NCBI GenBank assembly: GCA_051530055.1
Contig: CM121341.1
Location: 5,186,784 to 5,250,783, forward strand
Source of the DNA: Neoechinorhynchus agilis
Taxonomy: Eukaryota > Animalia > Acanthocephala
Length of the DNA: 64,000 nucleotides
Direction: 5' to 3'
Shown one piece after another: positions 29,561 to 56,716 of the stretch (its first letter is position 1; each line of letters begins with the position of its first letter). Made by a program: the position numbers and the translations under genes. The notes beneath the pieces were generated by a model, which saw nothing but the letters and a program-made list of their open reading frames with translations, ran no database searches and was not told the origin of the DNA.

Positions 29561-29929
29561 AGATTTGTTCTTATTTAACTGTTTGGGAAAACAATACTGA
29601 ATATGAACCGATGGAAAATGCAAACTATACCCAAGTTCTTCAAATTCGTTTCAAGCAGATTAACGTATATCACAGCCATTCCAAGGGGAGATTAAGCTTT
29701 CTGGCAAACGTAAACTACTGAAACTAAACTACATCAGTCGTAAAAAGTCTTGAAAAATGGGTTCCTTGGTAAGGGACAAAAGTACAAACCCTACAGTAAA
29801 TTCTTTTCTATAAATTTCGAACAAGGAATTCTGAGAATGAGTTACCTTTGTAAGTTAATAGATTCCACCCTCCATCTATTCTCAATACCGGTTCCTTACC
29901 CAGAAGTCGTACTATTTCGCCATTGGTCC

Positions 29930-30240
29930 GATGCCGGTTCTTCAAATCCTTTGTTAAATGTCTTTTCATAGAAGTCGATGGCCATTAATGTAAATACGGG
30001 CGGTTGCGATCGAGTTGTGTGGTACCCCTCGACCGCCATTAATTCGCAAATCCAGGGTTGATTACACTGTCCATTCGATTTAAAATAATTTTTTTACGGT
30101 ACGCTATTCTTGCACCGCACATTTGACGATCCAATACGAGTCCCGATTAATAAACCTCCCGAATCCTACCTCCTGGAAAAGGTTCAGATATTTCATTGGG
30201 AGAAACGATATCCGATCTAAATTTATATTCTCAGCTTACG
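29930..30240 (-). pseudogene. TREH: Trehalase fragment, variant B (copy 1)
   Basis: Reverse complement of 45750-46075: LFPGGRIREV..RDSYW, GFVINGGRGYHTTRSQPPVF. Confidence 0.75.
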
Positions 30241-30559
30241 CCCTGCACAATTGATTATTGACATCATAACAGCCGAAATTATATCGCCGTGATCATTAAA
30301 AGCCTCCTGTACTTCGTAGGAATATTGGTGGCATTGATATCAGCAATCAAAAACATAAGGACGATGAATTGAATGCCTGATGATCGCGTCTAATGTTTGA
30401 CCTTTAACAAACGTGGTCATCATGATTGAACATGGCAACACGTTCACGCAACGCTGTGGTGATCATTGAAGAAGACCAACGCATTGGTCAAAAATTCCGA
30501 TTAATTCCTAAATGAATATCTACACAAAAAGAGAAGTCCGGGGCGACTCGAAAATTTGA

Positions 30560-31270
30560 GTTGGGATGAGTGATTGGTAATGATAGAAATGAGTTTAGAG
30601 TTGAGATCTTGAATGGATCGAAGTAAAGGTAGAGAGATAATTATTTACTTGCTTCGGGAAAAAGAGAGTATTTCACGTGGAAGGGCTGGGAGATTGACCT
30701 TTGTGGTTATTCGGGCGCCGGTGGAGTTATACGTAATCAAAGAAACTGGGAAGTCGCTGATTCTTCGTGTTTTGGGATGGGGGAGATATTCGTGGGTGTT
30801 CGCTAAAAGTGACGGGTTACATTGGAAAAGATGAGATCTGAGTTAAGTTTGTAGGAACGGTGGAAAGATTTTGTAATGAGTTTTTATGTGGATAGATACG
30901 AACAGAAAGTTGTGAGGAGTCTGTGTCTCCTGTTAAGAACGAGGGAAGCTACGAGTGGTGAAATAAAAGTAACTTTGAGGATACGAGGTCTCGGGTTAAA
31001 TTGATTTTTGGAGGGAATACGCATAACAGTTGATGGGAAGGAATAGTAAAGTGAATGTCGGGGGAAAGGAGTTGACCGATACGAAGGAATTTGTTGCGGT
31101 TGTGTGTATCAGTGGCGACAGGATCTGTAAAGGAGGCTCCTGGCTTTTCAGAAATAAATGTGGTGCGATTTATATCCTAGAGAGAGGAGTGCATGACACG
31201 ATGGGTCGAATTCCGGGCACCGAGGGATGATGGGTGGGGTGGAGAAGGCGTATCATCACAGAAATGAATC
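30560..31270 (-). mobile_element. Degenerate Penelope-like RT relic (copy 1)
   Basis: Mirror of 43490-44200; see that entry. Confidence 0.45.
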
Positions 31271-32686
31271 GGAGGGTCGAATGATTTTGATGGTGTTCGT
31301 GTCAACCTTATATCCTTATAATTAGTTGTTCTCCCTTTTCCTTTTTTTCATTCGTTCCAATGTTTTTCGTCGACCTTTTGTTCAACCGTAGCTTTCTTAG
31401 TAGTTACTTCAGCTAAATCGCTTTCGCTTTCCGGGTGAAGACCTAAACAATAATTCTAATCACATTCCCCGAAACCTCACATATCGATCCCAGTTCGTAA
31501 ACCTTCAACCTCTCCAACATTGGTATTTCGTCTATGAAAGTAGTTTGAAATACTACTTTAAAAGTTTTTTGGTTGTGTGTTAAATTGGCCACATCGAAGT
31601 TTGGGTTTACTCTATTTTTAGATTGGAAGAGTGAAGTGCCTGGGTTTTGAGCCGATCTCAACGCTTCTCAAAGTGCAATTCAATCTCTCGCTCAAAGAAT
31701 CAACAAAAAAAGAAGAGCGAGTCATGAACTTTGTTGAAATCCATCAGGTTGCTGAAATATGTGAATGTCCAAAGGTTCTCCAAAAAAGTCAGAAATAATC
31801 TTTAAATAAGTCATTGACAATTAGGAGAGCCGGATTTTTTTGTTAGGATTTCAACTTGTACTCAAATAGTCGTTATGTTGCTTTCACACCGTAAACCTTA
31901 AGAGAGCGTTAAAACTCTTTATTCTGTGGTCTAAAACTCTTGATGGATTTACGACAAGGCTTTAGCAAATGCTTTTGTTTAAAAGCTTAAAATCGTAATC
32001 CAAGTTCATAAAATCACAAAACGAAGCGTTTAATGTCGATCTAACACAATCGAGACGAAAAACCATTAAAAAAATGTAAAATATATTAATTGATTATTAA
32101 GCAAAACTGCGTATAAAGACGATAATTCTTAAGACCAAAAAAAATTGCGCCTCCAACTTCGCCTTATTTTGTAATAAATCAAATCCATTTCGGTCAATCA
32201 TCAAAAGCGAAAAATGCAATAGAAAATTTCGAATAATTTGCAAACGACATAAAAACAAAGTATTTTAACTGGCGGTGTTTAGTGAAGTAAAAAATTTAAC
32301 AAAAATGATTCAGTCGAGCGAAGACGACTATATCTTGCCGAGCAAAAGAAAGTCTCGAGAAAAAAAATCAAGACAATGCCCGGTACGGAAAAATACACAG
32401 AAAGTGAAGCAAATCCAAAAGTAACTCCGTCAGAAAGTCTTGCAAAGGATACAAAAGTTTCGGGTGGTCTACAGGCCAAAAAACGTTCATATCAAAGGCA
32501 TAACTCGAAGAATCTGAGTGTACGGAACTTCCGACGGTTACCCAAGACACAAAGAGACCAAAGATTACAACGAAGACGAAGCAAAGCCGAAAGCGAGTCT
32601 CAAAACCTAGACTGGAGCCAAATCCGCCAGAAACAATTGAAAATTCAGGCGACTTCGATCAAACGGCATTTCCCAGGGAGCTAAAA

Positions 32687-33232
32687 ATGGGTTCCAAACG
32701 TCCAAGAAAATCGGCAGAAGTAAAAGAGGACTTAAGCCATGACGGCAAACGACAAAAGATGACGACGACCACGAAGCCAAGCCCTAAGCAAATCCCAGAA
32801 CCCCATTCAGAATCAAATGCTCCAGAGGTTATAATCATAGCGGAGGAATCCATGGAGTCGAAGGCAAATAAACTTGAAAGTTTTCAAATAAATGCTGAGC
32901 TGCCGAAGTCCCAGCCTCAAATACTAATAATTAATGTAAAAGAAACAAACATTTCGACGGATTTGGATAGAACGACATTTAAAAGCGACCTTAAAATCGG
33001 TTCTAAACGTGCCAGAGAATCGACAGAATTAAAACAAGATTCAATCCACGACGGCAAACGACTTAAGGTTGCATCGAAGCTGACGAAGCCGAGCTGGAAG
33101 CGAATTCCAACACCTCATCCGAAATTAAATGCGCCAGAGGTTATAATCCAATCTGACGATTCGGGAGAGTCGAAGGCAAATCAAGGCGAAAGTTCCAAAA
33201 AAAATCCGCAACAACCGAAGCCTCAATCCTAA
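32687..33232 (+). CDS. C-terminal-only form of the amplified orphan protein (two SIM-like repeats)
   Basis: 181-aa ORF from MGSKRPRK. Homology to the full gene starts ~32312 but is frameshifted upstream; the 5' half is replaced by the P block. Confidence 0.45.
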   Translation: MGSKRPRKSAEVKEDLSHDGKRQKMTTTTKPSPKQIPEPHSESNAPEVIIIAEESMESKANKLESFQINAELPKSQPQILIINVKETNISTDLDRTTFKSDLKIGSKRARESTELKQDSIHDGKRLKVASKLTKPSWKRIPTPHPKLNAPEVIIQSDDSGESKANQGESSKKNPQQPKPQS

Positions 33233-34114: not shown

Positions 34115-34798
34115 TTAAGCACTTTCCACATCTTCACGAAGGCTCCCTTCAATTCCCGGCGGTAAGGGTAGAAATGAATCGAACATTTCAGAACAAAGAT
34201 CCACCATAATTTGTCTTGTACTTTCAGGGGCTTCGGCGATGAACTTCGCTGGAATTCCTCCGAAAATACAATAGGGAGGGACGCAAGTATCAGCAGTTAG
34301 AAGGCTGTTTGGTAGAAGAATGCTACAATCCTTAAGGATCGAGCGCTTCTCACAAACGGAATTGTGGCCTAGAATTAAGAAAATGATGTGTTTTCTAGAG
34401 AAATCAACATGTAAACTTGCCGATCCGTACACAGGAACCAACTTGATTGCATTTAAGAACGCAATCATCTTCCACGATCGTATAGTCGCCAATCGATAGT
34501 TTTGAGAACGAATAAGAGGACGATGCGCGAGTAAAGAAGGGTTGGAGAATGCAGCTTCGTCCGAAATGACAGTATTTTCCAACTCGAATTGGAGCGAGAT
34601 CGCCTCTGAACACACAATTTTGTTGAATTATTACTCGACCGGTTAGAATGATATTTTGACTTCCTGCCATTAAAGATTTCTTTTCTTGAATACTCACACG
34701 TCCGTCGAAGGTTGTGTGAGTATTCACGTACAAACCTTATTTCCTGTGCTGGTTTCGAAGTATTCGGCGGGTCGAAAATATTGCTCACAGACTTCCAT
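34115..34798 (-). CDS. DCTN5: Dynactin subunit 5 (p25), copy 1; two introns; junction-1 TAA issue
   Basis: EYFETSTGNK..AGSQNIILTGRVII..VFRGDLAPIRVGKYC..IGDYTIVEDDCV..ILKDC..VPPYCIFGGIPAKF. Confidence 0.85.
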
Positions 34799-34845: not shown

Positions 34846-36255
34846 ATGCAAAATCAAGATTTTAACTACAAAACCTCAAAGAACCACTCTGAAACATCGT
34901 CCACGTCTCAAGCTGCATCTGAACACAAGGAGATTCTAAAAGCAGACAAGTCAACCGAAATCGAACACGAAGCATTCGAAACTTACGCCAAAGGAACAGA
35001 AGTACAATTTTATTTCAAGGAAGAGTCCAGAGATGAATGGTGGTCCGATGGAAAAGGTCATTCTGGACGGCGTCGAATACCAAGCAACCATTACACCTCC
35101 AAATGCTCGTGAAATGCACTTTGAATCTCGGGTAGCAGCTCACAACCGCCCACGAAAGCCCCCACCAGAACCTGAAGGAGGACTTCGTCTTCGAAGTGGT
35201 AGAAAAATGTTGAGTGCCATCGAGGTATTCAGGCAAGAGGAAGCAAAATCGAATTGTCCAAAGTCAACGAGATCGAAGGGTAGTACCAACGTTACGTCCA
35301 ATCGAAAACGAGTAAAAGGAGAACCCGAAGACGACTATGTCTTGCCGACCAAAAGAAAGATTCTCGAGAAAAAATCAAGACAATGCCCCGTACGGAAAAA
35401 TACAGAAAGTGAAGCAAATCCAAAAGTAACTCCGTCAGAAAGTCTTGCAAAGGATACAAAAGTTTCGGGTGGTCTACAGGCCAAAAAACGTTCAATATCA
35501 AAGGCACAACTCGAAGAATCTGAGTGTTCGGAACTTCCGATGGTTACCCAAGACATAAAGAGACCAAAGATTACAACGAAGACGAAGCCAAGCCGAAAGC
35601 GAGTCTCAAAACCTAAAATGGAACCAAATCCGCCAGAACACGAAAATTCAGGCACTGATCAAACGGCATTTCCCAGGGACAAAAAATGGGTTCCAAACGT
35701 CCAAAAAAATCGGCAGAAGTAAAAGAGGACTTAAGCCATGATGGCAAACGACAAAAGACACGACGACCACGAAGCCAAGCCCTAAGCAAATCTTAGAACC
35801 TCATTCAAAATCAAATGCGCCAGAGGTTATAATAATAGCGGAGGAATCCATGGAGTCGAAGGCAAATAAAGATGAAAGTTCTCAAATAAATCCAGAGCTG
35901 CCGAAGTCCAAGTCTCAAATACAAATGATTAATGTAAAGGAAACAAACATTTCGACGGATTTGGATAGAACGACATTAAAAAGCGACCTTAAAATCGGTT
36001 CTAAACGTGCCAGAGAATCTGACAGAATTAAAACAAGACTCAATCCACGACGGCAAACGACTTAAGGTTGGATCGAAGCTGACGAAGCCGAGCCGGAAGC
36101 GAATTCCAACACCTCATCCGAAACGCTTAAATGCGCCAGAGGTTAACCTATCTGACGATTCGGGGGAGTCGAAGGCAAATCAAGGCGAAAGTTCCCAAAT
36201 AAATCCGCAACAACCGAAGCTCCTCAATCCTAAATCAAAAGGACAAAATAAATGA
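34846..36255 (+). pseudogene. Amplified orphan gene, copy 1, several frameshifts
   Basis: Colinear with 37868-39262 but has small indels near 35040, 35640, 35690, 35760, 36020 and 36120. These may be consensus errors. Confidence 0.6.
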
Positions 36256-37136
36256 AACAGACGGCATTTTCCGGCGACCTAAATTTTTTTTTAAAACGTT
36301 TTTTTTATTAAAACGGCGATGAAACCAACGGCAGATAAAGATTCTAAGCAGTTAAAGTCCCCTTCTGAGTTTGCAGCAAAACGCAATAGCGGTTGAGATA
36401 AACACCAAAGTGTTCAATAGGCAAATTTTGTTCAGGAGTTTGGCATCAAATCGATCAATATAATTCAAGGAGCACTAGGAGAGAAGGGTCCTTTGGTTAA
36501 CAAAGAAGAGCAAATTTGGAACTACGAATAAACCTTTATTATTTAGTGAAAGTATTTTTTAAATGATTATTTGGTTAATAAATCCTATCAGAAATTCAGT
36601 AAATGAAAAAAGGAGAGATGTTCAAGTTGGGAGGGGATCAAAACCGGGAATAATCTTCTCGAAATGACGCCAGAAAAAAAGTTTTGGGCCATTATAACAC
36701 GAAATTTCCAAATCATTTGTCGACGATTCTCCCTGCAGAATGAATACTTTCTTCAGATTGGCGAAAAAGGACAATTACATAAATTTCGAAAATAAATCTT
36801 TTTTTAAAGTACACGACAATTTCGAGTTCATAAAATATTTCAAAAATTTAATAAATAGCAATCATTAAAGGGTCACGTGATCACGTTTTGTGACTAATTA
36901 TCAATAACCAATATTTTTCCGACAACAAAAGCACAAACACAAAGAAAACGTATTTCTAATTAAATACAAGAAAATAAATATTGATTGCTGATAATATTTG
37001 TGCAACAAACTGATTTCAAGCTTTCCCGTTCCCCTCTCGTTAAAGCGCTTCACCTTAATCGTATCGATAACAACGAGCAACTTAGCATCAAAACATCTCC
37101 AAGAATTTCCACCGGTAAGTTAAAAATCCGATCGGT

Positions 37137-37820
37137 TTAAGCATTTTCCACATCTTCACGAAGGCTCCCTTCAATTCCCGGCGGTAAGGGTAGAAATGAA
37201 TCGAACATTTCAGAACAAAGATCCACCATAATTTGTCTTGTACTTTCAGGGGCTTCGGCGATGAACTTCGCTGGAATTCCTCCGAAAATACAAATAGGAG
37301 GGACGCAAGTATCAGCAGTTAGAAGGCTGTTTGGTAGAAGAATGCTACAATCCTTAAGGATCGAGCGCTTCTCACAAACGGAATTGTGGCCTAGAATTAA
37401 GAAAATGATGTGTTTTCTAGAGAAATCAACATGTAAACTTGCCGATCCGTACACAGGAACCAACTTGATTGCATTTAAGAACGCAATCATCTTCCACGAT
37501 CGTATAGTCGCCAATCGATAGTTTTGAGAACGAATAAGAGGACGATGCGCGAGTAAAGAAGGGTTGGAGAATGCAACTTCGTCCGAAATGACAGTATTTT
37601 CCAACTCGAATAGGAGCGAGATCGCCTCTGAACACACAATTTTGTTGAATTATTACTCGACCAGTTAGAATGATATTTTGACTTCCTGCCATTAAAGATT
37701 TCTTTTCTTGAATACTCACACGTCCGTCGAAGGTTGTGTGAGTATTCACGTACAAACCTTGTTTCCTGTGCTGGTTTCGAAGTATTCGGCGGGTCGAAAA
37801 TATTGCTCACAGATTTCCAT
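37137..37820 (-). CDS. DCTN5: Dynactin subunit 5 (p25), copy 2
   Basis: Near-identical to copy 1, 3022 bp downstream. Confidence 0.85.
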
Positions 37821-37867
37821 CTAGAACATATTTTTTAGAGGTGCCAATTCCTTTTAACATTTTAGAT

Positions 37868-39262
37868 ATGCAAAATCAAGATTTTAACGACAAAACCTCA
37901 AAGAACCACTCTGAAACATCGTCCACGTCTCAAGCTGCATCTGAACACAAAGAGATTCTAAAAGAAGACAAGTCAACCGAAATCGAACGCGAAGCATTCG
38001 AAACTTACGCCAAAGGAACAGAAGTACAATTTTATTTCAAGGAAGAGTCCAGAGATGAATGCGGGGTCCGGACGGGAAAGGTCATTCTGGACGGCGTCGA
38101 ATACCAAGCAACCATTACACATCCAAATGCTCGTGAAATGCACTTTGAATCTCGGGTAGCAGCTCACAACCGCCCACGAAAGCCCCCACCAGAACCTGAA
38201 GGAGGACTTCGTCTTCGAAGTGGTAGAAAAATGTTGAGTGCCATCGAGGTATTCAGGCAAGAGGAAGCAAAATCGAATTGTCCAAAGTCAACGAGATCGA
38301 AGGGTAGTACCAACGTTACGTCCAATCGAAAACGAGTAAAAGGAGAACCCGAAGACGACTATGTCTTGCCGACCAAGAGAAAGATTCTCGAGAAAAAATC
38401 AAGACAATGCCCCATACGGAAAAATACAGAAAGTGAAGCAAATCCAAAAGTAACTCCGTCAGAAAGTCTTGCAAAGGATACAAAAGTTTCGGGTGGTCTA
38501 CAGGCCAAAAAACGTTCAATATCAAAGGCACAACTCGAAGAATCTGAGTGTTCGGAACTTCCGATGGTTACCCAAGACATAAAGAGACCAAAGATTACAA
38601 CGAAGACGAAGCCAAGCCGAAAGCGAGTCTCAAAACCTAAAATGGAACCAAATCCGCCAGAAACAATTGAAAATTCAGGGGACTTCGATCAAACGGCATT
38701 TCCCAGGGAGCTAAAAATGGGTTCCAAACGTCCAAAAAAATCGGCAGAAGTAAAAGAGGACTTAAGCCATGATGGCAAACGACAAAAGATGACGACGACC
38801 ACGAAGCCAAGCCCTAAGCAAATGCCAGAGCCAAATTCAGAATCAAATGCCCCAGAGGTTATAATAATAGCGGAGGAATCCATGGAGTCGAAGGCAAATA
38901 AAGATGAAAGTTATCAAATAAATCCTGAACTGCCGAAGTCCCAGTCTCAAATACAAATGATTAATGTAAAAGAAACAAACATTTCGACGGATTTGGATAG
39001 AACGACATTAAAAAGCGACCTTAAAATCGGTTCTAAACGTGCCAGAGAATCGACAGAATTAAAACAAGACTCAATCCACGACGGCAAACGACTTAAGGTT
39101 GGATCGAAGCTGACGAAGCCGAGCCGGAAGCGAATTCCAACACCTCATCCAAAATTAAATGCGCCCGAGGTTATAATCCTATCTGACGATTCGGGAGAGT
39201 CGAAGGCAAATCAAGGCGAAAGTTTCCAAATAAATCCGCAACAACCGAAGCCTCAATCCTAA
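37868..39262 (+). CDS. Amplified orphan protein, intact 464-aa copy: disordered K/E/S-rich, GLRLRSGR motif, NLS-like and SIM-like repeats
   Basis: Single open frame from ATG after ttttag-at; internal duplication of ~103-aa period GSKR..HDGKR..PEVII. Confidence 0.8.
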   Translation: MQNQDFNDKTSKNHSETSSTSQAASEHKEILKEDKSTEIEREAFETYAKGTEVQFYFKEESRDECGVRTGKVILDGVEYQATITHPNAREMHFESRVAAHNRPRKPPPEPEGGLRLRSGRKMLSAIEVFRQEEAKSNCPKSTRSKGSTNVTSNRKRVKGEPEDDYVLPTKRKILEKKSRQCPIRKNTESEANPKVTPSESLAKDTKVSGGLQAKKRSISKAQLEESECSELPMVTQDIKRPKITTKTKPSRKRVSKPKMEPNPPETIENSGDFDQTAFPRELKMGSKRPKKSAEVKEDLSHDGKRQKMTTTTKPSPKQMPEPNSESNAPEVIIIAEESMESKANKDESYQINPELPKSQSQIQMINVKETNISTDLDRTTLKSDLKIGSKRARESTELKQDSIHDGKRLKVGSKLTKPSRKRIPTPHPKLNAPEVIILSDDSGESKANQGESFQINPQQPKPQS

Positions 39263-39583
39263 ATCAAAAGGACAAAAATAAGTGAAAAAAAAGGCATTTT
39301 CCGGCGACCTAAAAAATGATTAAAACGGCGATGAAGCCAACGGCAGATAAAGATTCAAAGCAGTTAAAGTCGTCCCTCTGAGTCTGCAGCAAAACGCAGT
39401 AGCGGTTGAAATAAACACCAAAGTGTTCAATTGGCAAATATTGTTCAGGAGTTTGGTATCAAAGCGATCAATCAAATTCAAGGAGCACTAGGAGAGAAGG
39501 GTCCTTTGGTTAACAAAGAAGAGCAAATTTGGAACTACGAATAAACCTTTATTATTTAGTGAAAGTATTTTTTAAATGATTAT

Positions 39584-40177
39584 TTAGGGAGTTACTTTTG
39601 GATTTGCTTCACTTTCTGTATTTTTCCGTGCGGGGCATTGTCTTGATTTTTTCTCGAGAATCTTTCTTTTGGTCGGCAAGACATAGTCGTCTTCGGGTTC
39701 TCCTTTTACTCGTTTGCGATTGGACGTAACGTTGGCACTACCCTTCGATCTCGTTGACTTTGGACAATTCAATTTTGCTTCCTCTTGCCTGAATACCTCG
39801 ATGGCACTCAACATTTTTCTACCACTTCGAAGACGAAGTCCTCCTTCAGGTTCTGGTGGGGGCTTTCGTGGGCGGTTGTGAGCTGCTACCCGAGATTCAA
39901 AGTGCATTTCACGAGCATTTGGATGTGTAATGGTTGCTTGGTATTCGACGCCGTCCAGAATGACCTTTCCCGTCCGGACCCCGCATTCATCTCTGGACTC
40001 TTCCTTGAAATAAAATTGTACTTCTGTTCCTTTGGCGTAAGTTTCGAGTTCTTCGTGTTCGATTTCGGTTGACTTGTCTTCTTTTAGAATCTCTTTGTGT
40101 TCAGATGCAGCTTGAGACGTGGACGATGTTTCAGAGTCGTTCTTTGAGGTTTTGTCGTTAAAATCTTGATTTTGCAT
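39584..40177 (-). CDS. N-terminal-only (197-aa) form of the orphan protein at the inversion junction
   Basis: Matches the first 197 aa. A TAA is created by the junction aaagtaactccc-taa at 39584-39586. Confidence 0.5.
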   Translation of the reverse strand: MQNQDFNDKTSKNDSETSSTSQAASEHKEILKEDKSTEIEHEELETYAKGTEVQFYFKEESRDECGVRTGKVILDGVEYQATITHPNAREMHFESRVAAHNRPRKPPPEPEGGLRLRSGRKMLSAIEVFRQEEAKLNCPKSTRSKGSANVTSNRKRVKGEPEDDYVLPTKRKILEKKSRQCPARKNTESEANPKVTP

Positions 40178-40224: not shown

Positions 40225-40908
40225 ATGGAAGTCTGTGAGCAATATTTTCGACCCGCCGAATACTTCGAAACCAGCACAGGAAACAAGGTTTGTACGTGAA
40301 TACTCACACAACCTTCGACGGACGTGTGAGTATTCAAGAAAAGAAATCTTTAATGGCAGGAAGTCAAAATATCATTCTAACTGGTCGAGTAATAATTCAA
40401 CAAAATTGTGTGTTCAGAGGCGATCTCGCTCCAATTCGAGTTGGAAAATACTGTCATTTCGGACGAAGCTGCATTCTCCAACCCTTCTTTACTCGCGCAT
40501 CGTCCTCTTATTCGTTCTCAAAACTATCGATTGGCGACTATACGATCGTGGAAGATGATTGCGTTCTTAAATGCAATCAAGTTGGTTCCTGTGTACGGAT
40601 CGGCAAGTTTACATGTTGATTTCTCTAGAAAACACATCATTTTCTTAATTCTAGGCCACAATTCCGTTTGTGAGAAGCGCTCGATCCTTAAGGATTGTAG
40701 CATTCTTCTACCAAACAGCCTTCTAACTGCTGATACTTGCGTCCCTCCCTATTGTATTTTCGGAGGAATTCCAGCGAAGTTCATCGCCGAAGCCCCTGAA
40801 AGTACAAGACAAATTATGGTGGATCTTTGTTCTGAAATGTTCGATTCATTTCTACCCTTACCGCCGGGAATTGAAGGGAGCCTTCGTGAAGATGTGGAAA
40901 ATGCTTAA
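40225..40908 (+). CDS. DCTN5: Dynactin subunit 5 (p25), copy 3 (inverted); introns ~40292-40338 and 40603-40654 (GC-AG)
   Basis: Removing GCAAGT..TTCTAG joins VRIG to HNSVCEKRSILKDC, which aligns without gaps to the p25 VHIGKNCVIGRRCVLKDC segment. Confidence 0.85.
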
Positions 40909-41777: not shown

Positions 41778-42434
41778 TTATTTTTTTCCTTTCGGTAGTT
41801 CCGGATTTATTTGGGAACTTTCGCCTTGATTTGCCTTCGACTCCCCCGAATCGTCAGATAGGATTATAACCTCGGGCGCATTTAATTTCGGATGAGGTGT
41901 TGGAATTCGCTTCCGGCTCGGCTTCGTCAGCTTCGATGCAACCTTAAGTCGTTTGCCGTCGTGGATTGAGTCTTGTTTTAATTCCGTCGATTCTCTGGCA
42001 CGTTTAGAACCGATTTTAAGGTCGCTTTTAAATGTCGTTCTATCCAAATCCGTCGAAATGTTTGTTTCCTTTACATTAATTATTAGTATTTGAGGCTGGG
42101 ACTTCGGCAGCTCAGCATTTATTTGAAAACTTTCATCTTTATTTGCCTTCGACTCCATGGATTCCTCCGCTATGATTATAACCTCTGGCGCATTTGATTT
42201 TGAATGAGGTTCTAAGATTTGCTTAGGGCTTGGCTTCGTGGTCGTCGTCATCTTTTGTCGTTTGCCATCATGGCTTAAGTCTTCTTTTACTTCTGCCGAT
42301 TTTCTTGGACGTTTGGAACCCATTTTTAACTCCCTGGGAAATGCCGTTTGATCGAAGTCGCCTGAATTTTCAATTGTTTCTGGCTGATTTGGCTCCAGTT
42401 TAGGTTTTGAGACTAGCCTGCGGCTTGACTTCAT
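41778..42434 (-). CDS. C-terminal-only form of the orphan protein (ELPKGKK end), inverted
   Basis: Open frame containing both PEVII repeats; first in-frame ATG segment is MGSKRPRK. Confidence 0.45.
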   Translation of the reverse strand: MKSSRRLVSKPKLEPNQPETIENSGDFDQTAFPRELKMGSKRPRKSAEVKEDLSHDGKRQKMTTTTKPSPKQILEPHSKSNAPEVIIIAEESMESKANKDESFQINAELPKSQPQILIINVKETNISTDLDRTTFKSDLKIGSKRARESTELKQDSIHDGKRLKVASKLTKPSRKRIPTPHPKLNAPEVIILSDDSGESKANQGESSQINPELPKGKK

Positions 42435-43489
42435 CTTCGTTGTAACCTTTTGTCTTTTTGTGTCTTGGGTAACCGTCGGAAGTTCCGTACACTCAGATTC
42501 TTCGAGTTGTGCCTTTGACCTTGAACGTTTTTTTTTGCGCGTCGATCATCCGAAACCTTTGTGTCCTTTGCAAGACTTTCTGACGAAGTTGCTTTTAGTT
42601 TTGTTTCACTTTCTTTATTTTTTGGTGCGGTGCATTGTCTTGATTTTTTTCTCGAGACTTTCTTTTGCTCGGCATGACATAGTCGTCTTCGCTCGACTGA
42701 ATCATTTATGTTAAATTTTTTACTTTGCTAAACACCGCCAGTTAAAATACTTTGTTTTTGTGTCGTTTGCAAATTATTCGAAATTTTCAATTGCATTTTT
42801 CGCTCTTGATGATTGACCGAAATGGATTTGATTTATTACAAAATAAGGCGAAGTTGGAGGCATAAAAATTTTGGTCTTAAGAATTATCGTCTTTATACGC
42901 AGTTTTGCTTAATAATCAATTAAAATATTTTACATTTTTTTAATGGTTTTTCGTCTCGATTGTGTTAGATCGACATTAAACGCTTCGTTTTGTGATTTTA
43001 TGAACTCGGATTACGATTTTAAGCTTTTAAACAAAAGTATTTGCTAATGCCTTGTCGTAAATCCATCAAGAGTTTTAGACCACAGAATAAAGAGTTTTAA
43101 CGCTCTCTTAAGGTTTACGGTGTTAAAGCAACATAACGACTATTTTAGTACAAGTGGAAATCCTAACAAAAATCCGGCTCTCCTAATTGTCAATGACTTA
43201 TTTAAAGATTATTTCTGACTTTTTTGGAGAACCTTTGGACATTCACATATTTCAGCAGCCTGATGGATTTCAACAAAGTTCATGACTCGCTCTTCTTTTT
43301 TTGTTTATTCTTTGAGCGAGAGATTGAAGAATTGCACTTTGAGAAGCATTGAGATCGGCTCAAAACCCAGGCACTTCACTCCTCCAATCTAAAAATAGAA
43401 TAAACCCAAGAATATGGAAGGATCCGAGCAAAAGTAAAAACAAGAGCAGAAGGTGGAACTCCATCAAAATCATTCGACCCTCCGATTCA

Positions 43490-44200: not shown

Positions 44201-44464
44201 TTTCGAGTCGCCCCGGACTTCTCTTTTTGTGTAGATATTCATTTAGGAATTAATCGGAATTTTCGACCTATGCGTTGGCCTTCTTCAATGATCACCACAG
44301 CGTTGCGTGAACGTGTTGCCATGTTCAATCATGATGGCCTCCATTGTGATTCGGTCACGTTTGTTAAAGGTCAAACATTAGACGCGATCATCAGGCATTC
44401 AATTCATCGTCCTTATGTTTTTGATTGCTGATATCAATGCCACCAATATTCCTACGAAGTACAG

Positions 44465-45579
44465 TCTTGAAGGCTGAGTCAAAGTCCTTGGCTCGGATGA
44501 TGAAGCATCCTTACGGCCTTGAACTTGTGCCCAGGCGATGTATTTTTTGAACGCGTCACATTTCTTTCAATGTGACCAATGGCCGTCGCCATCACAGTTT
44601 GAACAATGTTTTCGAGTCCTACTGCATTTAGAACTATGATGATCCAGCCAGCAGAAGGCGCATTTTGTCAACTTTGTAGGACAACGTTGCTCCCAGTGAC
44701 CCCAACACTTACAACTGTTGCATCGCGGGAAGTGATAATCAGCAAAATTGTAAACATTATCAGCAGTAAATTTGACTACCATAGAATTGAAATAGCACCT
44801 CTCCAAAGTCAACGTGTCCCTGCTCTCGACATTGCCTATCACAATCGCTTTCAGGATCATATTCACTGATCTGGCCGATTTTAGAAAAAAATAGGATCTC
44901 GACGCCCAACTTGCCCTCGAATTCCCGTTTATCGACTTCATCAATGTCTGGGGATAATCCAAAGACCATAAAGGTTGACTGGTAGCTGGAGTCGGTAATT
45001 AAAACACCGGAGAGACCGTATATTTTTCTCGTGAATTCTATAAATCCTTCGACGAAACGTCTGCCAATTAACAAAACTCTCAACCTCCAACCGAAATTGG
45101 TTGTCGAGCAAATTCTATGCACGTCGTCCTTGAACGTTTTGAACCATGGAACCAAGAATCTTCGATGCACCTCCTTCCTCGGGAGTAGCGGATTGGATTG
45201 TATGGCCACAGTAAGTGGCCATCTCTTGGTTGGGACTTCCAAAAGAGAAGAATCGTCCTGGGGTGTACGGGAGTTGGGTTTGGGTGCTACGTCTCCGAGA
45301 ATAGTACTCCGGACCTCCCGTGGCACAAGAATTCTAAGAGAATTGGGTGGTCGTTTGCCACTCTCCGCCAACGACTGAACATTGGTGTGCATTGTTTTAA
45401 TATTGACGTTATTGATATTTTTTTAGTGCATATTGATTTTTTTTAATGCATATCGATGTTTTTTAATACGGTCGAAGTTGCCATGTTGCAAAGTAGTTTT
45501 AAAATTCACATTAACAAGTTTGAACCAATGATTCAAACCTTGAAATTCGTCCACTTTTTGTGTGCTGGTGAAGCGGCAG
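44465..45579 (-). mobile_element. Non-LTR retrotransposon ORF1 (gag-like, triple zinc knuckle) fragment flanked by an 86-bp direct repeat
   Basis: RCNSCKCWGHWEQRC-..-CAFCWLDHHSSKC-..-CSNCDGDGH; frameshifted; no ORF2. Confidence 0.75.
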
Positions 45580-45749
45580 TAGACGCGATCATCAGGCATT
45601 CAATTCATCGTCCTTATGTTTTTGATTGCTGATATCAATGCCACCAATATTCCTACGAAGTACAGGAGGCTTTTAATGATCACGGCGATATAATTTCGGC
45701 TGTTATGATGTCAATAATCAATTGTGCAGGGCGTAAGTTGAGAATATAA

Positions 45750-46075
45750 ATTTAGATCGGATATCGTTTCTCCCAATGAAATATCTGAACCTTTTTCCAG
45801 GAGGTAGGATTCGGGAGGTTTATAATCGGGACTCGTATTGGATCGTCAAATGTGCGGTGCAGAATAGCCGATACCGTAAAAAAAATTATTTTAAATCGAA
45901 TGGACAGTGTAATCAACCCTGGATTTGTGATTAATGGCGGTCGAGGGTACCACACAACTCGATCGCAACCGCCCGTATTTACATTAATGGCCATCGACTT
46001 CTATGAAAAGACATTTAACAAAGGATTTGAAGAACCGGCATCGGACCAATGGCGAAATAGTACGACTTCTGGGTA
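45750..46075 (+). pseudogene. TREH: Trehalase fragment, variant B (copy 2)
   Basis: MKYLNLFPGGRIREVYNRDSYW; NPGFVINGGRGYHTTRSQPPVFTLMAIDFYEKT. Confidence 0.75.
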
Positions 46076-47462
46076 AGGAACCGGTATTGAGAATAGATGG
46101 AGGGTGGAATCTATTAACTTACAAAGGTAACTCATTCTCAGAATTCCTTGTTCGAAATTTATAGAAAAGAATTTACTGTTCGGTTTGTACTTTTGTCCCT
46201 TACCAAGGAACCCATTTTTCAAGACTTTTTACGACTGATGTAGTTTAGTTTCAGTAGTTTACGTTTGCCTGAAAGCTTAATCTCCCCTTAACATGGCTGT
46301 GATATACGTTAATCTGCTTGAAACGAATTTGAAGAACTTGGGTATTAGAAGTCTCAATTGGTTCGGATCTCACGATGTTTTTGGGTTTACCTATTTTAGA
46401 TTGAAGAGTGAAGTGCCTGGTTTTGAGCCGATCTCAATGCTTCTCAAAGTGCAATTCTTCAATCTCTCGCTCAAAGAATAAACAAAAAAAGAAGAGCGAG
46501 TCATGAACTTTGTTGAAATCAATCAGTTGCTGAAATATGAATGTCCAAAGGTTCTCCAAAAAAGTCAGAAATAATCTTTAAACAAGTCATTGACAATAGG
46601 AGAGCCGGATTTTTGTTAGGATTTCCACTTGTACTCCTGGAAAAAATAGTCGTTAAGTGTTGCTTTAACACCGTAAACCTTAAGAGAGCGTTAAAACTTT
46701 ATTCTGTGGTCTAAAACTCTTGATGGATTTACGACAAGGCATTAGCAAATGCTTTTGTTTAAAAGCTTAAAATCGTAATCCGAGTTCATAAAATAATAAA
46801 ACGAAGCGTTTAATGTCGATCTAACACAATCGAGACGAAAAACCATTAAAAAAATGTAAAATATATTAATTGATTATTAAGCAAAACTGCGTATAAAGAC
46901 GATAATTCTTAAGACCAAAATATTGCGCCGCCAACTTCGCCTTATTTTGTAATAAATCGAATCCATTTCGGTCAATCATCAAGAGCGAAAAATGCAATTG
47001 AAAATTTCGAATAATTTGCAAACGACATAAAAACAAAGTATTTTAACTGGCGGTGTTTAGTGAAGTAAAAAATTTAACATAAATGCTTCAGTCGAGCGAA
47101 GACGACTATGTCATGCCGAGCAAAAGAAAGTCTCGAGAAAAAAATCAAAACAATGCACCGCACCAAAAAATAAAGAAAGTGAAACAAAACTAAAAGCAAC
47201 TTCGTCAGAAAGTCTTGCAAAGGATACAAAAGTTTCGGGTGGTCGACAGGCCAAAAAACGTTCAATATCAAAGGCACAACTCGAAGAATCTGAGTGTACG
47301 GAACTTCCGACGGTTACCCAAGACACAAAGAGACCAAAGATTACAACGAAGACGAAGCAAAGCCGCAAGCTAGTCTCAAAACCTAGACTGGAGCCAAATC
47401 CGCCAGAAACAATTGAAAATTCAGGGGACTTCGATCAAACGGCATTTCCCAGGGAGCTAAAA

Positions 47463-48008
47463 ATGGGTTCCAAACGTCCAAGAAAATCGGCAGAAGTAAA
47501 AGAGGACTTAAGCCATGACGGCAAACGACAAAAGATGACGACGACCACGAAGCCAAGCCCTAAGCAAATCCCAGAACCCCATTCAGAATCAAATGCTCCA
47601 GAGGTTATAATCATAGCGGAGGAATCCATGGAGTCGAAGGCAAATAAACTTGAAAGTTTTCAAATAAATGCTGAGCTGCCGAAGTCCCAGCCTCAAATAC
47701 TAATAATTAATGTAAAAGAAACAAACATTTCGACGGATTTGGATAGAACGACATTTAAAAGCGACCTTAAAATCGGTTCTAAACGTGCCAGAGAATCGAC
47801 AGAATTAAAACAAGATTCAATCCACGACGGCAAACGACTTAAGGTTGCATCGAAGCTGACGAAGCCGAGCTGGAAGCGAATTCCAACACCTCATCCGAAA
47901 TTAAATGCGCCAGAGGTTATAATCCAATCTGACGATTCGGGAGAGTCGAAGGCAAATCAAGGCGAAAGTTCCAAAAAAAATCCGCAACAACCGAAGCCTC
48001 AATCCTAA
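47463..48008 (+). CDS. C-terminal-only form of the orphan protein
   Basis: Same 181-aa translation as 32687-33232. Confidence 0.45.
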   Translation: MGSKRPRKSAEVKEDLSHDGKRQKMTTTTKPSPKQIPEPHSESNAPEVIIIAEESMESKANKLESFQINAELPKSQPQILIINVKETNISTDLDRTTFKSDLKIGSKRARESTELKQDSIHDGKRLKVASKLTKPSWKRIPTPHPKLNAPEVIIQSDDSGESKANQGESSKKNPQQPKPQS

Positions 48009-48888
48009 ATCAAAAGGACAAAATAAATGAAACAAACGGCATTTTTCGGCGACCAAATTTTTTTTTAAAACGGCCATGAAGCCAACGGCAGATAAAGATT
48101 CTAAGCAGTTAAAGTCCCCTTCTGAGTTTGCAGCAAAACGCAGTAGCAGTTGAAACACCAAAGTGTTCAATTGGCAAATATTGTTCAGGAGTCTGGCATC
48201 AAATCGATCAATCAAATTCAAGAAGCATCAGGAAAGAAGGGTCCTTTGGTTAACAAAGAAGAGCAAATTTGGAACTACGAATAAACCTTTATTACTTAGT
48301 GAAAGTATTTTTTAAATGATTATTTAGTTAATAAATCTTATTAGTTATTTAGTAAATGTTAAAAAGAGAGATGTTCAAGTTGGGAGGGGATCAAAACCGG
48401 GATAATCTTCTCGAAATGACGCCAGAAAAAAAGTTTTGGGCCATTATAACACGAAATTTCCAAATCATTTGTCGACGATTCCCCTGCAGAATGAATACTT
48501 TCTTCAGATTGGCGAAAAAGGACAATTACATAAATTTCGAAAATAAATCTTTTTTTAAAGTACACGACAATTTCGAGTTCATAAAATATTTCAAAAATTT
48601 AATAAATAGCAATCATTAAAGGGACACGTGATCACGTTTTGTGACTAATTATCAATAACTAATATTTTTCCGACAGCAAAAGCACAAACACAAAGAAAAA
48701 CGTACTTCTAATTAAATACAAGAAAATAAATATTGATTGTGGATAATATTTGTGCAACAAACTGATTTCAAGCTTTCCCGTTCCCCTCTCGTTAAAGCGC
48801 TTCACCTTAATCGTATCGATAACAACGAGCAACTTAGCATCAAAACATCTCCAAGAATTTCCACCGGTAAGTTAAAAATCCGATCGGT

Positions 48889-49572
48889 TTAAGCACTTTC
48901 CACATCTTCACGAAGGCTCCCTTCAATTCCCGGCGGTAAGGGTAGAAATGAATCGAACATTTCAGAACAAAGATCCACCATAATTTGTCTTGTACTTTCA
49001 GGGGCTTCGGCGATGAACTTCGCTGGAATTCCTCCGAAAATACAATAGGGAGGGACGCAAGTATCAGCAGTTAGAAGGCTGTTTGGTAGAAGAATGCTAC
49101 AATCCTTAAGGATCGAGCGCTTCTCACAAACGGAATTGTGGCCTAGAATTAAGAAAATGATGTGTTTTCTAGAGAAATCAACATGTAAACTTGCCGATCC
49201 GTACACAGGAACCAACTTGATTGCATTTAAGAACGCAATCATCTTCCACGATCGTATAGTCGCCAATCGATAGTTTTGAGAACGAATAAGAGGACGATGC
49301 GCGAGTAAAGAAGGGTTGGAGAATGCAACTTCGTCCGAAATGACAGTATTTTCCAACTCGAATTGGAGCGAGATCGCCTCTGAACACACAATTTTGTTGA
49401 ATTATTACTCGACCAGTTAGAATGATATTTTGACTTCCTGCCATTAAAGATTTCTTTTCTTGAATACTCACACGTCCGTCGAAGGTTGTGTGAGTATTCA
49501 CGTACAAACCTTGTTTCCTGTGCTGGTTTCGAAGTATTCGGCGGGTCGAAAATATTGCTCACAGACTTCCAT
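48889..49572 (-). CDS. DCTN5: Dynactin subunit 5 (p25), copy 4
   Basis: Near-identical to the other copies. Confidence 0.85.
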
Positions 49573-49619
49573 CTAGAACATATTTTTTAGAGGTGCCAAT
49601 TCCTTTTAACATTTTAGAT

Positions 49620-50870
49620 ATGCAAAATCAAGATTTTAACGACAAAACCTCAAAGAACCACTCTGAAACATCGTCCACGTCTCAAGCTGCATCTGAACAC
49701 AAAGAGATTCTAAAAGAAGACAAGTCAACCGAAATCGAACACGAAGAACTCGAAACTTACGCCAAAGGAACAGAAGTACAATTTTATTTCAAGGAAGAGT
49801 CCAGAGATGAATGCGGGGTCCGGACGGGAAAGGTCATTCTGGACGGCGTCGAATACCAAGCAACCATTACACATCCAAATGCTCGTGAAATGCACTTTGA
49901 ATCTCGGGTAGCAGCTCACAACCGCCCACGAAAGCCCCCACCAGAACCTGAAGGAGGACTTCGTCTTCGAAGTGGTAGAAAAATGTTGAGTGCCATCGAG
50001 TTATTCAGGCAAGAGGAAGCAAAATTGAATTGTCCAAAGTCAACGAGATCGAAGGGTAGTGCCAACGTTACGTCCAATCGCAAACGAGTAAAAGGAGAAC
50101 CCGAAGACGACTATGTCTTGCCGACCAAAAGAAAGATTCTCGAGAAAAAATCAAGACAATGCCCCGCACGGAAAAATACAGAAAGTGAAGCAAATCCAAA
50201 AGTAACTCCGTCAGAAAGTCTTGCAAAGGATACAAAAATTTCGGGTGGTCGACAGGCCAAAAAACGTTCAATATCAAAGGCACAACTCGAAGAATCTGAG
50301 AGTTCGGAACTTCCGATGGTTACCCAAGACACAAAGAGACCAAAGATTACAACGAAGACGAAGCCAAGCCGAAAGCGAGTCTCAAAACCTAAACTGGAAC
50401 CAAATCCGACAGAAACAATTGAAAATTCAGGCGACTTCGATCAAACGGCATTTCCCAGGGAGCTAAAAATGGGTTCCAAACGTCCAAGAAAATCGGCAGA
50501 AGTAAAAGAGGACTTAAGCCATGATGGCAAACGACAAAAGATGACGACGACCACGAAGCCAAGCCCTAAGCAAATCCCAGAACCCCATTCAGAATCAAAT
50601 GCCCCAGAGGTTATAATAATAGCGGAGGAATCCATGGAGTCGAAGGCAAATAAAGATGAAAGTTTTCAAATAAATGCTGAGCTGCCGAAGTCCCAGTCTC
50701 AAATACAAATGATTAATGTAAAAGAAACAAACATTTCGACGGATTTGGATAGAACGACATTAAAAAGCGACCTTAAAATCGGTTCTAAACGTGCCAGAGA
50801 ATCGACGGAATTAAAACAAGACTCAATCCACGACGGCAAACGACTTAAGGTTGCATCGAAGCTGACGTAG
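49620..50870 (+). CDS. Amplified orphan gene, copy 4; premature TAG removes the second SIM-like motif
   Basis: ctgacg-TAG-ccg at 50868, where other copies read ctgacg-AAG-ccg; the frame continues to 51013. Confidence 0.65.
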   Translation: MQNQDFNDKTSKNHSETSSTSQAASEHKEILKEDKSTEIEHEELETYAKGTEVQFYFKEESRDECGVRTGKVILDGVEYQATITHPNAREMHFESRVAAHNRPRKPPPEPEGGLRLRSGRKMLSAIELFRQEEAKLNCPKSTRSKGSANVTSNRKRVKGEPEDDYVLPTKRKILEKKSRQCPARKNTESEANPKVTPSESLAKDTKISGGRQAKKRSISKAQLEESESSELPMVTQDTKRPKITTKTKPSRKRVSKPKLEPNPTETIENSGDFDQTAFPRELKMGSKRPRKSAEVKEDLSHDGKRQKMTTTTKPSPKQIPEPHSESNAPEVIIIAEESMESKANKDESFQINAELPKSQSQIQMINVKETNISTDLDRTTLKSDLKIGSKRARESTELKQDSIHDGKRLKVASKLT

Positions 50871-51389
50871 CCGAGCCGGAAGCGAATTCCAACACCTCAT
50901 CCAAAATTAAATGCGCCCGAGGTTATAATCCTATCTGACGATTCGGGAGAGTCGAAGGCAAATCAAGGCGAAAGTTCCCAAATAAATCCGCAACAACCGA
51001 AGCCTCAATCCTAAATCAAAAGGACAAAAATAAGTGAAAAAAAAGGCATTTTCCGGCGACCTAAAAAATGATTAAAACGGCGATGAAGCCAACGGCAGAT
51101 AAAGATTCAAAGCAGTTAAAGTCGTCCCTCTGAGTCTGCAGCAAAACGCAGTAGCGGTTGAAATAAACATCAAAGTGTTCAATAGGCAAATATTGTTCAG
51201 GAGTCTGGCATCAAATCGATCAATTAAATTCAAGGAGCACCAGGAGAGAAGGGTCCGTTGGTTAACAAAGAAGAGCAAATTTGGAACTACGAATAAACCT
51301 TTACTATTTAGTGAAAGTATTTTTTAAATGATTATTTAGTTACTAGATCTTAATAAACATTTAGTAAATGATAAAAAGGGTAGAAATAC

Positions 51390-52659
51390 GGAGTTCGACC
51401 ATGTGAAGCACCTTGTTTCGAAAAATCCTTCAGCTTCTCTTCCAAAAGGTCCTCTCGACTTGACTGAGGAGGCTTATCCCTGGATGGCTCCACATTGGTC
51501 GCAGCGTGTGACTAGACGTTGAGGAAACGCGAAGTTCAGTAGACGGTCTTGAAGGCTGAGTCAAAGTCCTTGGCTCGGATGATGAAGCATCCTTACGGCC
51601 TTGAACTTGTGCCCAGGCGATGTATTTTTCGAACGCGTCACATTTCTTTCAATGTGACCAATGGCCGTCGCCATCTCAGTTTGAACAATGTTTTCGAGTC
51701 CTACTGCATTTAGAACTATGATGATCCAGCCAGCAGAAGGCGCATTTTGTCAACTTTGTAGGACAACGTTGCTCCCAGTGACCCCAACACTTACAACTGT
51801 TGCATCGCGAGAAGTGATAATCAGCAAAATTGTAAACATTATCAGCAGTAAATTTGACTACCATAGAATTGAAATAGCACCTCTCCAAAGTCAACGTGTC
51901 CCTGCTCTCGACATTGCCTATCACAATCGCTTTCGGGATCATATTCGCTAATCTGGCCGATTTTAGAAAAAAATAGGATCTTGACGCCCAACTTCCCCTC
52001 GAATTCCCGTTTATCGACTTCATCAATGTCTGGGAATAATCCAAAGACCATAAAGGTTGACTGGTAGCTGGAGTCGGTAATTTAAACACCGGAGAGACCG
52101 TATTTTTTTCTCGTGAATTCTATAAATCCTTCGACGAAACGTCTGCCAATTAACAAAACTCTCAACCTCCAACCGAAATTGGTTGTCGAGCAAATTCTAT
52201 GCACGTCGTCCTTGAACGTTTTGAACCATGGAACCAAGAATCTTCGATGCACCTCCTTCCTCGGGAGTAGCGGATTGGATTGTATGGCCACAGTAAGTGG
52301 CCATCTCTTGGTTGGGACTTCCAAAAGAGAAGAATCGTCCTGGGGTGTACGGGAGTTGGTTTGGGTGCTACGTCTCCGAGAATAGTACTCCGGACCTCCC
52401 GTGGCACAAGAATTCTAAGAGAATTGGGTGGTCGTTTGCCACTCTCCGCCAATGACTGAACATTGGTGTGCATTGTTTTAATATTGACGTTATTGATATT
52501 TTTTTAGTGCATATTGATTTTTTTTAATGTATATCGATTTTTTTTAATACGGTCGCAGTTGCCATGTTGCAAAGTAGTTTTAAAATTACATTAACAAGTT
52601 TGAACCAATGATTCAAACCTTGAAATTCGTCCACTTTTTGTGTGCTGGTGAAGCGGCAG
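51390..52659 (-). mobile_element. Longer copy of the gag-like ORF1 fragment
   Basis: Same zinc-knuckle translation as 44465-45579 and same right junction, with ~155 bp extra on the left. Confidence 0.75.
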
Positions 52660-52829
52660 TAGACGCGATCATCAGGCATTCAATTCATCGTCCTTATGTT
52701 TTTGATTGCTGATATCAATGCCACCAATATTCCTACGAAGTACAGGAGGCTTTTAATGATCACGGCGATATAATTTCGGCTGTTATGATGTCAATAATCA
52801 ATTGTGCAGGGCGTAAGTTGAGAATATAA

Positions 52830-53155
52830 ATTTAGATCGGATATCGTTTCTCCCAATGAAATATCTGAACCTTTTTCCAGGAGGTAGGATTCGGGAGGTT
52901 TATAATCGGGACTCGTATTGGATCGTCAAATGTGCGGTGCAGAATAGCCGATACCGTAAAAAAATTATTTTAAATCGAATGGACAGTGTAATCGACCCTG
53001 GATTTGTGATTAATGGCGGTCGAGGGTACCACACAACTCGATCGCAACCGCCCGTATTTACATTAATGGCCATCGACTTCTATGAAAAGACATTTAACAA
53101 AGGATTTGAAGAACCGGTATCGGAACAATGGCGAAAGAGTACGACTTCTGGGTAA
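52830..53155 (+). pseudogene. TREH: Trehalase fragment, variant B (copy 3)
   Basis: MKYLNLFPGGRIREVYNRDSYW..NGGRGYHTTRSQPP. Confidence 0.75.
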
Positions 53156-54572: not shown

Positions 54573-55115
54573 ATGGGCTCTAAACGTCCAAGAAAATCGG
54601 CAGAAGTAAAAGAGGACTTAAGCCATGATGGCAAACGACAAAAGATGACGACGACGAAGCCAAGCGCTAAGCAAATCTTAGAACCTCATTCAAAATCAAA
54701 TGCCCCAGAGGTTATAATAATAGCGGAGGAATCCATGGAGTCGAAGGCAAATAAAGATGAAAGTTTTCAAATAAATGCTGAGCTGCCGAAGTCCCAGCCT
54801 CAAATACTAATAATTAATGTAAAAGAAACAAACATTTCGACGGATTTGGATAGAACGACATTTAAAAGCGACCTTAAAATCGGTTCTAAACGTGCCAGAG
54901 AATCGACAGAATTAAAACAAGACTCAATCCACGACGGCAAACGACTAAAGGTTGCATCGAAGCTGACGAAGCCGAGCCGGAAGCGAATTCCAACACCTCA
55001 TCCGAAATTAAATGCGCCCGAGGTTATAATCCTATCTGACGATTCGGGGGAGTCGAAGGCAAATCAAGGCGAAAGTTCCCAAATAAATCCGGAACTACCG
55101 AAAGGAAAAAAATAA
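54573..55115 (+). CDS. C-terminal-only form of the orphan protein (ELPKGKK end)
   Basis: 180-aa ORF from MGSKRPRK. Confidence 0.45.
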   Translation: MGSKRPRKSAEVKEDLSHDGKRQKMTTTKPSAKQILEPHSKSNAPEVIIIAEESMESKANKDESFQINAELPKSQPQILIINVKETNISTDLDRTTFKSDLKIGSKRARESTELKQDSIHDGKRLKVASKLTKPSRKRIPTPHPKLNAPEVIILSDDSGESKANQGESSQINPELPKGKK

Positions 55116-56669: not shown

Positions 56670-56716
56670 CTAGAACATATTTTTTAGAGGTGCCAATTGC
56701 TTTTAACATTTTAGAT

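Follow-up and report, generated by a model that had tools for sequence, protein, structure and literature searches.

A transcribed, locally amplified gene family of Neoechinorhynchus agilis with a candidate LANA-like acidic-patch motif and SIM-like repeats

A stretch of 64,000 nt from the genome of the acanthocephalan Neoechinorhynchus agilis (contig CM121341.1, positions 5,186,784 to 5,250,783; hereafter the window, in whose coordinates all positions are given) harbors a real, transcribed gene, referred to as copy B, which belongs to a protein family that is new. The family comprises three diverged lineages in the N. agilis genome, and the mechanism proposed here for the product of copy B is built from known kinds of short motif. 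In the best-supported account, the constrained parts of the protein are an old module, consisting of a small N-terminal domain and the sequence LR[SN]G[KR], and a newer repeat module, consisting of basic clusters resembling nuclear localization signals (NLS-like) and a core resembling a SUMO-interacting motif (SIM-like). From these motifs, copy B may encode a nuclear chromatin-associated adaptor that would be tethered to the nucleosome acidic patch through L-R-S-G and would bind SUMO-modified partners by its tail, a tentative reading to which we assign a probability of about 0.35. The source species was confirmed as N. agilis by named database matches; a draft genome of this species has been published together with whole-body mRNA-seq from 66 individuals (PMC12690905).

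Gene structure, transcription and protein architecture

An open reading frame (ORF) occupies 37841-39262 (+), and its first ATG, at 37868, opens 464 codons plus stop. This ATG, and not the GTG at 37841, is likely the start of copy B. One RNA contig (run X2) was spliced from 37113/4 to 37865/6 with GT..AG ends, the acceptor TTTTAG lying 2 nt 5' of the ATG, and no ATG-initiated frame in the ORF list of the window enters the 5' exon junction. Because the spliced joint stands 2 nt before the ATG, the gene has a non-coding 5' exon, and a gene identified as DCTN5 by Pfam PF21711 (E 3.5e-23) is located within the first intron. The ATGs of DCTN5 and of copy B are separated by 46 nt. The following features were assigned to copy B; P0005 and P0006 are two distant paralogs described below.

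37085-37114 (+): 3' end of the 5' exon, non-coding; donor CCG/GTAAGT at 37114/37115
37115-37865 (+): first intron, 751 nt, ending in TTTTAG; entire DCTN5 coding region inside, antisense
37868-39262 (+): single coding exon of copy B, 464 codons plus stop; the sole intact full-length copy in the window
38000-38197 (+): conserved N-terminal module, aa 45-110, common to P0005 and P0006
38000-38248 (+): invariant block, codons 45-127; nucleotide sequence uniform across copies B, C, D and E and the listed RNA variants
38201-38230 (+): GGLRLRSGRK, candidate arginine anchor; family-conserved core L116 R117 S118 G119 R120
38351-38680 (+): fast-evolving linker, aa 162-271; basic, Ser-/Thr-rich, includes repeat 0
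38681-38950 (+): repeat 1, with KRPK and KRQK clusters, psi-K-x-D (VKED) and SIM-like core 1 at 38852-38881
38984-39259 (+): repeat 2, with KRAR, KRLK, LKQD and SIM-like core 2 at 39164-39193
39319-39324 (+): probable polyadenylation signal ATTAAA; RNA contigs stop downstream at 39341-39371

The locus was contained in four public runs, whose contigs were taken as transcript-derived; they represent RNA, since spliced DCTN5 joints are present in them. RNA contigs of 1785 and 2043 nt spanned the whole copy B ORF with zero indels (coverage 37815-39290), and transcripts from several individuals retained the full ORF. The listed RNA variants, 22-27 substitutions, were applied to the sequence (five further variants are outside the list); they left the frame of 464 codons intact, as well as the motif and both SIM-like cores.

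On re-reading copy B, the strings quoted in an earlier sequence-only reading of this DNA were all located where it had placed them. The beta-rich stretch covers aa 53-83, with VQFYF at aa 53 and RTGKVILDGVEYQATI at aa 68-83, GGLRLRSGRK corresponds to aa 112-121 (38201-38230), and the two SIM-like segments are PEVIIIAEES (aa 329-338; 38852-38881) and PEVIILSDDS (aa 433-442; 39164-39193), preceded by DGKRQK at aa 302 and DGKRLK at aa 405. The two-fold C-terminal repeat that it had described is present, but with a period of 104 aa (312 nt) and not ~103 aa. Likewise, the basic clusters it had noted occur in both repeats, although the first reads GSKRPKK in copy B and GSKRPRK in sister copies only. 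Repeats 1 and 2 share 54% identity at the protein level and about 72% at the DNA level, and a third, degenerate repeat (repeat 0) was recognized upstream at aa about 203-272, its core having decayed to PETIENSGD. In composition, the protein is rich in K, S, E, P and T. Compared with shuffles of the copy B protein, K[KR]x[KR] was found 7 times versus 2.0, and psi-K-x-[DE] was enriched as well (6 versus 2.0). We infer that the protein is mostly disordered and probably nuclear.

Family, constraint and short motifs

An exhaustive phmmer search of 1.84 billion representatives returned four matches, all from N. agilis, and thus no relative outside this species, although other acanthocephalan genomes may be absent from the libraries. 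Two matches were members of the array described below and two were the distant paralogs, P0005 (262 aa), located far off on the same chromosome, and P0006 (254 aa), on another chromosome. Both paralogs are single-exon genes amid ordinary neighbours, and were 54% (P0005) and 42% (P0006) identical to copy B over query residues 18-127. The description of the protein as an orphan therefore holds outside the species, whereas within it nine local copies or fragments and the two distant paralogs were found. No Pfam match was obtained for copy B, P0005 or P0006 (E up to 1-5), and a word-index search of proteins returned only N. agilis entries, whether the query was the single protein or the family profile. 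A feature search of the ESM Atlas with the N-terminal 140 aa and with P0005 gave no usable match. In the PDB, a sequence search with the 27-aa motif peptide returned nothing, not even LANA, and a search with the family profile matched nothing but a low-complexity part of RNA polymerase I subunit rpa14.

An AlphaFold 2 (AF2) model of aa 40-135 (96 aa) placed strands at aa 56-62, 68-74 and 77-83 and a helix at aa 88-100. It was based on an alignment of the three diverged lineages only, with a mean predicted local distance difference test score (pLDDT) of 75 and 80-84 in the domain. A small hairpin bridge was modelled at aa 115-121 around S118-G119 (pLDDT about 70), followed by a helix. A model of 200 aa was poor (pLDDT 53). 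Exhaustive structural searches with both models yielded no fold match above Z 3.2, the best being unrelated chains, and no fold was assigned because nothing exceeded this value. A chromodomain-like or Tudor-like fold was considered and dropped for the same reason; a chromoshadow domain came up at no more than Z 2.4, within the noise.

The segment GGLRLRSGRK had been likened to GMRLRSGRS of the latency protein LANA of Kaposi's sarcoma-associated herpesvirus (KSHV). This likeness stands for 7 of 9 identical positions, but its G-[ML]-R half is confined to the array copies. The hydrophobic-x-L-R-S-G core is present in copy B as L114-R-L116-R117-S118-G119. The LANA peptide is MAPPGMRLRSGRSTGAPLTRGSY, and its 8LRS10-to-AAA mutant loses acidic-patch binding (PMC3945288); IL-33 has been described as strikingly similar to LANA here, and its R48A and 47AAA49 mutants lose binding (PMC6092330). 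The sequence-only reading had named non-conservation of the motif in orthologues among the outcomes that would refute it; no loss was seen in the relatives, the core being kept in both paralogs at the same spacing to the domain. From the domain helix onward, the three lineages align free of indels (GGLRLRSGRKML, DGRFLRSGKRML and NQRCLRNGKHL), P0005 carrying LRSGK and P0006 LRNGK at a spacing identical to that in copy B. Across the three lineages, L116, R117 and G119 are invariant, while position 118 is S or N and position 120 is R or K; the upstream hydrophobic position of the motif is unconserved, with R in both paralogs. The sequence flanking the motif, both the linker before it and the residues after it, diverges among the lineages, and the motif is the last conserved island before the family alignment decays into unrelated sequence. 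The preceding linker is Pro-rich, and the 96-aa model, of modest confidence here, gave a pLDDT of about 68-73 and a two-residue bridge. Three other candidate motifs, namely a D-box (RKMLSAIE), a basophilic kinase site (RLRS) and PP1 docking, were dropped, as none was retained in the paralogs.

Chance-match frequencies were estimated from typical residue frequencies. For G[ML]RLRSGR the rate was about 5e-10 per residue, that is, about 0.002 per proteome, and LR[SN]G[KR] arose in 0.3% of shuffles of the copy B protein. The match alone is weak evidence, since about one or more such matches are expected by chance over a scan of this size; its weight rests on conservation and context.

Both C-terminal cores satisfy the SIM pattern ([VIL]-x-[VIL]-[VIL] or [VIL]-[VIL]-x-[VIL]), with VIII at aa 331 and VIIL at aa 435. 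Their flanks are acidic or Ser-containing (AEES, SDDS) and they lie in the K-, S-, E-, P-, T-rich tail. SIM2, VIILSDDS, resembles the hDaxx SIM IIVLSDSD, which is a validated SIM (PMC3174244). The paralogs lack a SIM, and of the three other full-length copies, two (C and D) have a stop or a frameshift ahead of SIM2.

Self-comparison of the window showed that 29.6-58.5 kb (about 29 kb) consists of units 94-98% identical to each other, with a roughly 7-kb higher-order repeat (44461-51378 versus 51543-58473) and an inversion centred near 39588. Five DCTN5 copies were co-amplified with the orphan gene in 29600-58500. Besides copy B, the array contains eight copies or fragments of the gene.

34846-36233 (+): copy A, full length, several frameshifts, one of them from a 2-nt deletion within the domain
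49620-51014 (+): copy C, AAG-to-TAG change leaving 416 aa; SIM2 lost
56717-58111 (+): copy D, 1-nt insertion giving a 418-aa ORF; SIM2 out of frame
39588-40177 (-): copy E (P0007), inverted; N-terminal 197 aa only, with domain and motif and no SIM
32319-33232 (+): partial copy p1, starting at gene nt 483; 181-aa ORF opening at the Met of MGSKRP and ending at the normal stop
41791-42691 (-): partial copy p2, inverted; 218-aa C-terminal ORF
47097-48008 (+): partial copy p3; 180-181-aa C-terminal ORF from the Met of MGSKRP
54177-55102 (+): partial copy p4 (P0004); 180-181-aa C-terminal ORF from the Met of MGSKRP

Copy E was cut by the inversion, and p1-p4 begin at gene nt 483 without the N-terminus, their upstream parts carrying indels. 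The array arose by recent, unstable segmental amplification, and most of its copies are either broken or split into pieces with only the N- or only the C-terminal part. The amplified unit also contained an ORF with CCHC zinc knuckles (C-x2-C-x4-H-x4-C type; 44567-44962, -), as is typical of retrotransposon gag or ORF1, and this segment recurs at about 29627-31298 and 52657-53424.

Variation among the copies was distributed unevenly along the gene and was lowest around the motif and in SIM1. Of the 50 variable sites among copies B, C, D, E and the listed RNA variants, codons 45-127 contained 0 versus 8.8 expected (binomial P 6e-5, with block limits set post hoc), and this invariant block is exactly the part common to the paralogs; changes within it occurred only in the frameshifted copy A. 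Ratios of nonsynonymous to synonymous polymorphism (pN/pS), summed pairwise from non-independent pairs and small counts, were 1.03 for aa 1-44, 1.10 for aa 162-271 (eight copies), 0.17 for aa 272-345, which include the K/R clusters and SIM1 of repeat 1, and 0.63 for aa 346-464. SIM1 residues were unchanged at the protein level in all eight copies containing them, despite synonymous changes within.

Proposed chromatin tethering and competing readings

The ancestral module of the family comprises a domain of roughly 55 aa, with three strands and a helix, followed at fixed spacing by L-R-[SN]-G-[KR]. The array copies have gained a long disordered tail of 104-aa repeats with NLS-like K/R clusters, psi-K-x-D and a V-I-I-[IL] core to which acidic residues or Ser are appended. 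The arginine of L-R-S-G would insert into the H2A-H2B acidic patch, as in LANA and IL-33, and the tail may engage SUMO-modified partners through its SIM-like cores. A nucleosome tether joined to a SUMO reader is plausible as the most specific mechanism fitting all the observations.

Several results weigh against this adaptor model. At the positions of LANA M6 and R7 the paralogs read R and F/C, which leaves half of the motif without family-wide conservation. By chance, about ten occurrences per proteome are expected for the minimal core LRSG[KR], and about one or more 7/9 LANA matches across a scan of this size (both estimates). The fixed spacing of the motif and the modest AF2 confidence also fit a structural extension of the domain. 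As for constraint, synonymous variation is likewise absent from codons 45-127, which could reflect recent gene conversion instead of selection, and whole-gene dN/dS between copies is 0.4-1.0. In the tail, the bare SIM pattern is unenriched (2 found versus 1.1-1.2 expected in shuffles), and the HP1-binding pattern P-x-V-x-[IL] fits the same PEVII[IL] residues. Finally, eight of the nine copies of the gene are truncated or frameshifted.

About as likely as the tether model is that the LANA resemblance is coincidental, LR[SN]G being a structural extension of the N-terminal domain or another docking site, in a fast-evolving, disordered nuclear protein such as one of germline chromatin or packaging. 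With so short a core and with multiple testing over the scan, a match by chance is likely. The fixed spacing to the domain, the hairpin modelled beside it, the absence of the G-[ML]-R half from the paralogs, the K-, S-, E-, P-rich composition, the tandem and inverted amplification with rapid turnover and the regions with pN/pS near 1 also speak for this reading. Coincidence accounts less well for the identity of the conserved residues, which are exactly the L-R-S-G core of LANA and IL-33 that is required for LANA binding, and for the position of the motif as the last conserved island before the alignment decays.

A second alternative concerns only the tail. P-x-V-x-L is the consensus of HP1 chromoshadow binding, and the PEVII[IL] cores might act as such P-x-V-x-[LI] motifs instead of, or besides, SIMs, giving a link to heterochromatin. 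P-x-V-x-[LIMV] was enriched (2 versus 0.21 expected in shuffles), and neither its Pro nor its Val differs between the repeats or among the copies. The run of four aliphatic residues followed by acidic residues or Ser is, however, the classic, Daxx-like layout of a SIM, and HP1 motifs usually need no acidic tail; we consider the HP1 reading improbable.

It is also very unlikely that the array is merely decaying DNA, its transcription a by-product of the adjacent DCTN5 promoter and its long ORF persisting since the duplication is young: the many truncated or frameshifted copies (8/9), the whole-gene dN/dS of 0.4-1.0, the 46 nt between the two ATGs and the inability of contigs to assign a strand speak for it, but on the + strand the gene has a 5' exon of its own, joined by GT..AG splicing, the full ORF is kept in transcripts of several individuals despite 22-27 substitutions, constraint is region-specific, the old paralogs have the conserved domain in common, and all four partial copies retain a C-terminal ORF of 180-218 aa while their upstream parts carry indels.

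The adaptor model can be extended to an evolutionary scenario, which we regard as unlikely on balance: a lineage-restricted animal family would have independently evolved the acidic-patch anchor of LANA and IL-33, one branch would have fused it to a multivalent SUMO/SIM tail, and amplification into an unstable array would also have yielded anchor-only and tail-only versions. Such a pattern would fit a chromatin gene in genetic conflict or in rapid germline evolution.

Neighbouring features and known systems

The DCTN5 gene in the first intron of copy B showed unusual splicing. At its intron 1 (37704-37751, -), RNA contigs of all four runs removed 47 nt with gene-strand ends CG..AA or AC..AA, which restores the DCTN5 frame (GNKVCKKSLMAGSQNI...). 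A GT..AG pair at 37757..37707 was unused; its use would create an in-frame TAA. The removed 47 nt are almost wholly a perfect 13-bp-stem hairpin, and the piece therefore looks like a non-canonical, hairpin-type intron; a skip by reverse transcriptase is less likely. The hairpin element was also present in other DCTN5 copies, e.g., at 34687-34726 and 40297-40336. The second intron (37391-37442, -) is a 52-nt GC-AG intron (CGG/GCAAGT ... TCTAG/) with RNA joints in three runs. DCTN5 transcripts carried a 5' leader ending in ...TGAAAAAACTTGCAAAC, joined at the AG just 5' of the ATG (37820-37823, -). This leader was not found in the 64-kb window with up to 2 mismatches, its source being either trans-splicing or a 5' exon far away.

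Elsewhere in the window, a tandem array at 1-2088 has a period of about 176 nt and copies 90-97% identical, and a 2.1-kb direct duplication (11645-13779 and 18927-20997) shows 92.6% identity. A 714-aa orphan ORF (60876-63017, -) has a terminal SIM-like motif and an internal tandem repeat (60985-61890, 84-nt period). It was considered as a relative of copy B and rejected, the two being unrelated on comparison.

If the motif binds the acidic patch, the L-R-S-G anchor of LANA type would have three independent origins, with this one the first beyond vertebrates and vertebrate viruses, and the family would exemplify how fast short chromatin-docking motifs arise in young genes. The array provides natural variants (full, anchor-only and tail-only) for separating tethering from SUMO reading. 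Should the motif not bind, the locus would remain a clear case of a transcribed lineage-specific family amplifying and decaying in a parasite genome, of local interest only.

Among known systems, KSHV LANA (aa 5-13, GMRLRSGRS) resembles copy B in 7 of 9 residues, including the L-R-S triad and the following G-R. The LANA peptide forms a hairpin when bound, and a small hairpin was modelled by AF2 in the copy B motif. The LANA motif stands at a free N-terminus, whereas copy B carries its motif internally (aa 112-121), after a folded domain. LANA is viral and copy B is a cellular, invertebrate protein with no homology to it; M6 is Leu in copy B and Arg in the paralogs, and binding by copy B is a prediction from its motif. 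The core of IL-33 is spelled L-R-S-G, and its chromatin-binding domain is cellular like copy B, with this core within a nuclear disordered region. IL-33 is, however, a vertebrate cytokine, unrelated in sequence to copy B outside the motif and without SIM-like repeats.

The tail may be compared with hDaxx (IIVLSDSD) and multi-SIM proteins of the RNF4 type, with which copy B shares a four-residue aliphatic core followed by Ser or acidic residues, at least two copies and a disordered region. Unlike RNF4-type proteins, copy B has no RING or other catalytic domain, its SIM-like cores lie 104 aa apart and are not clustered, and its SUMO binding is predicted. Human SSX is an amplified, fast-evolving family whose SSXRD engages the acidic patch. 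The SSX family and the N. agilis array are both multi-copy with broken copies, and both encode basic nuclear proteins, predicted as such for copy B, with an acidic-patch motif that is a candidate in the array; there is no sequence relationship between them.

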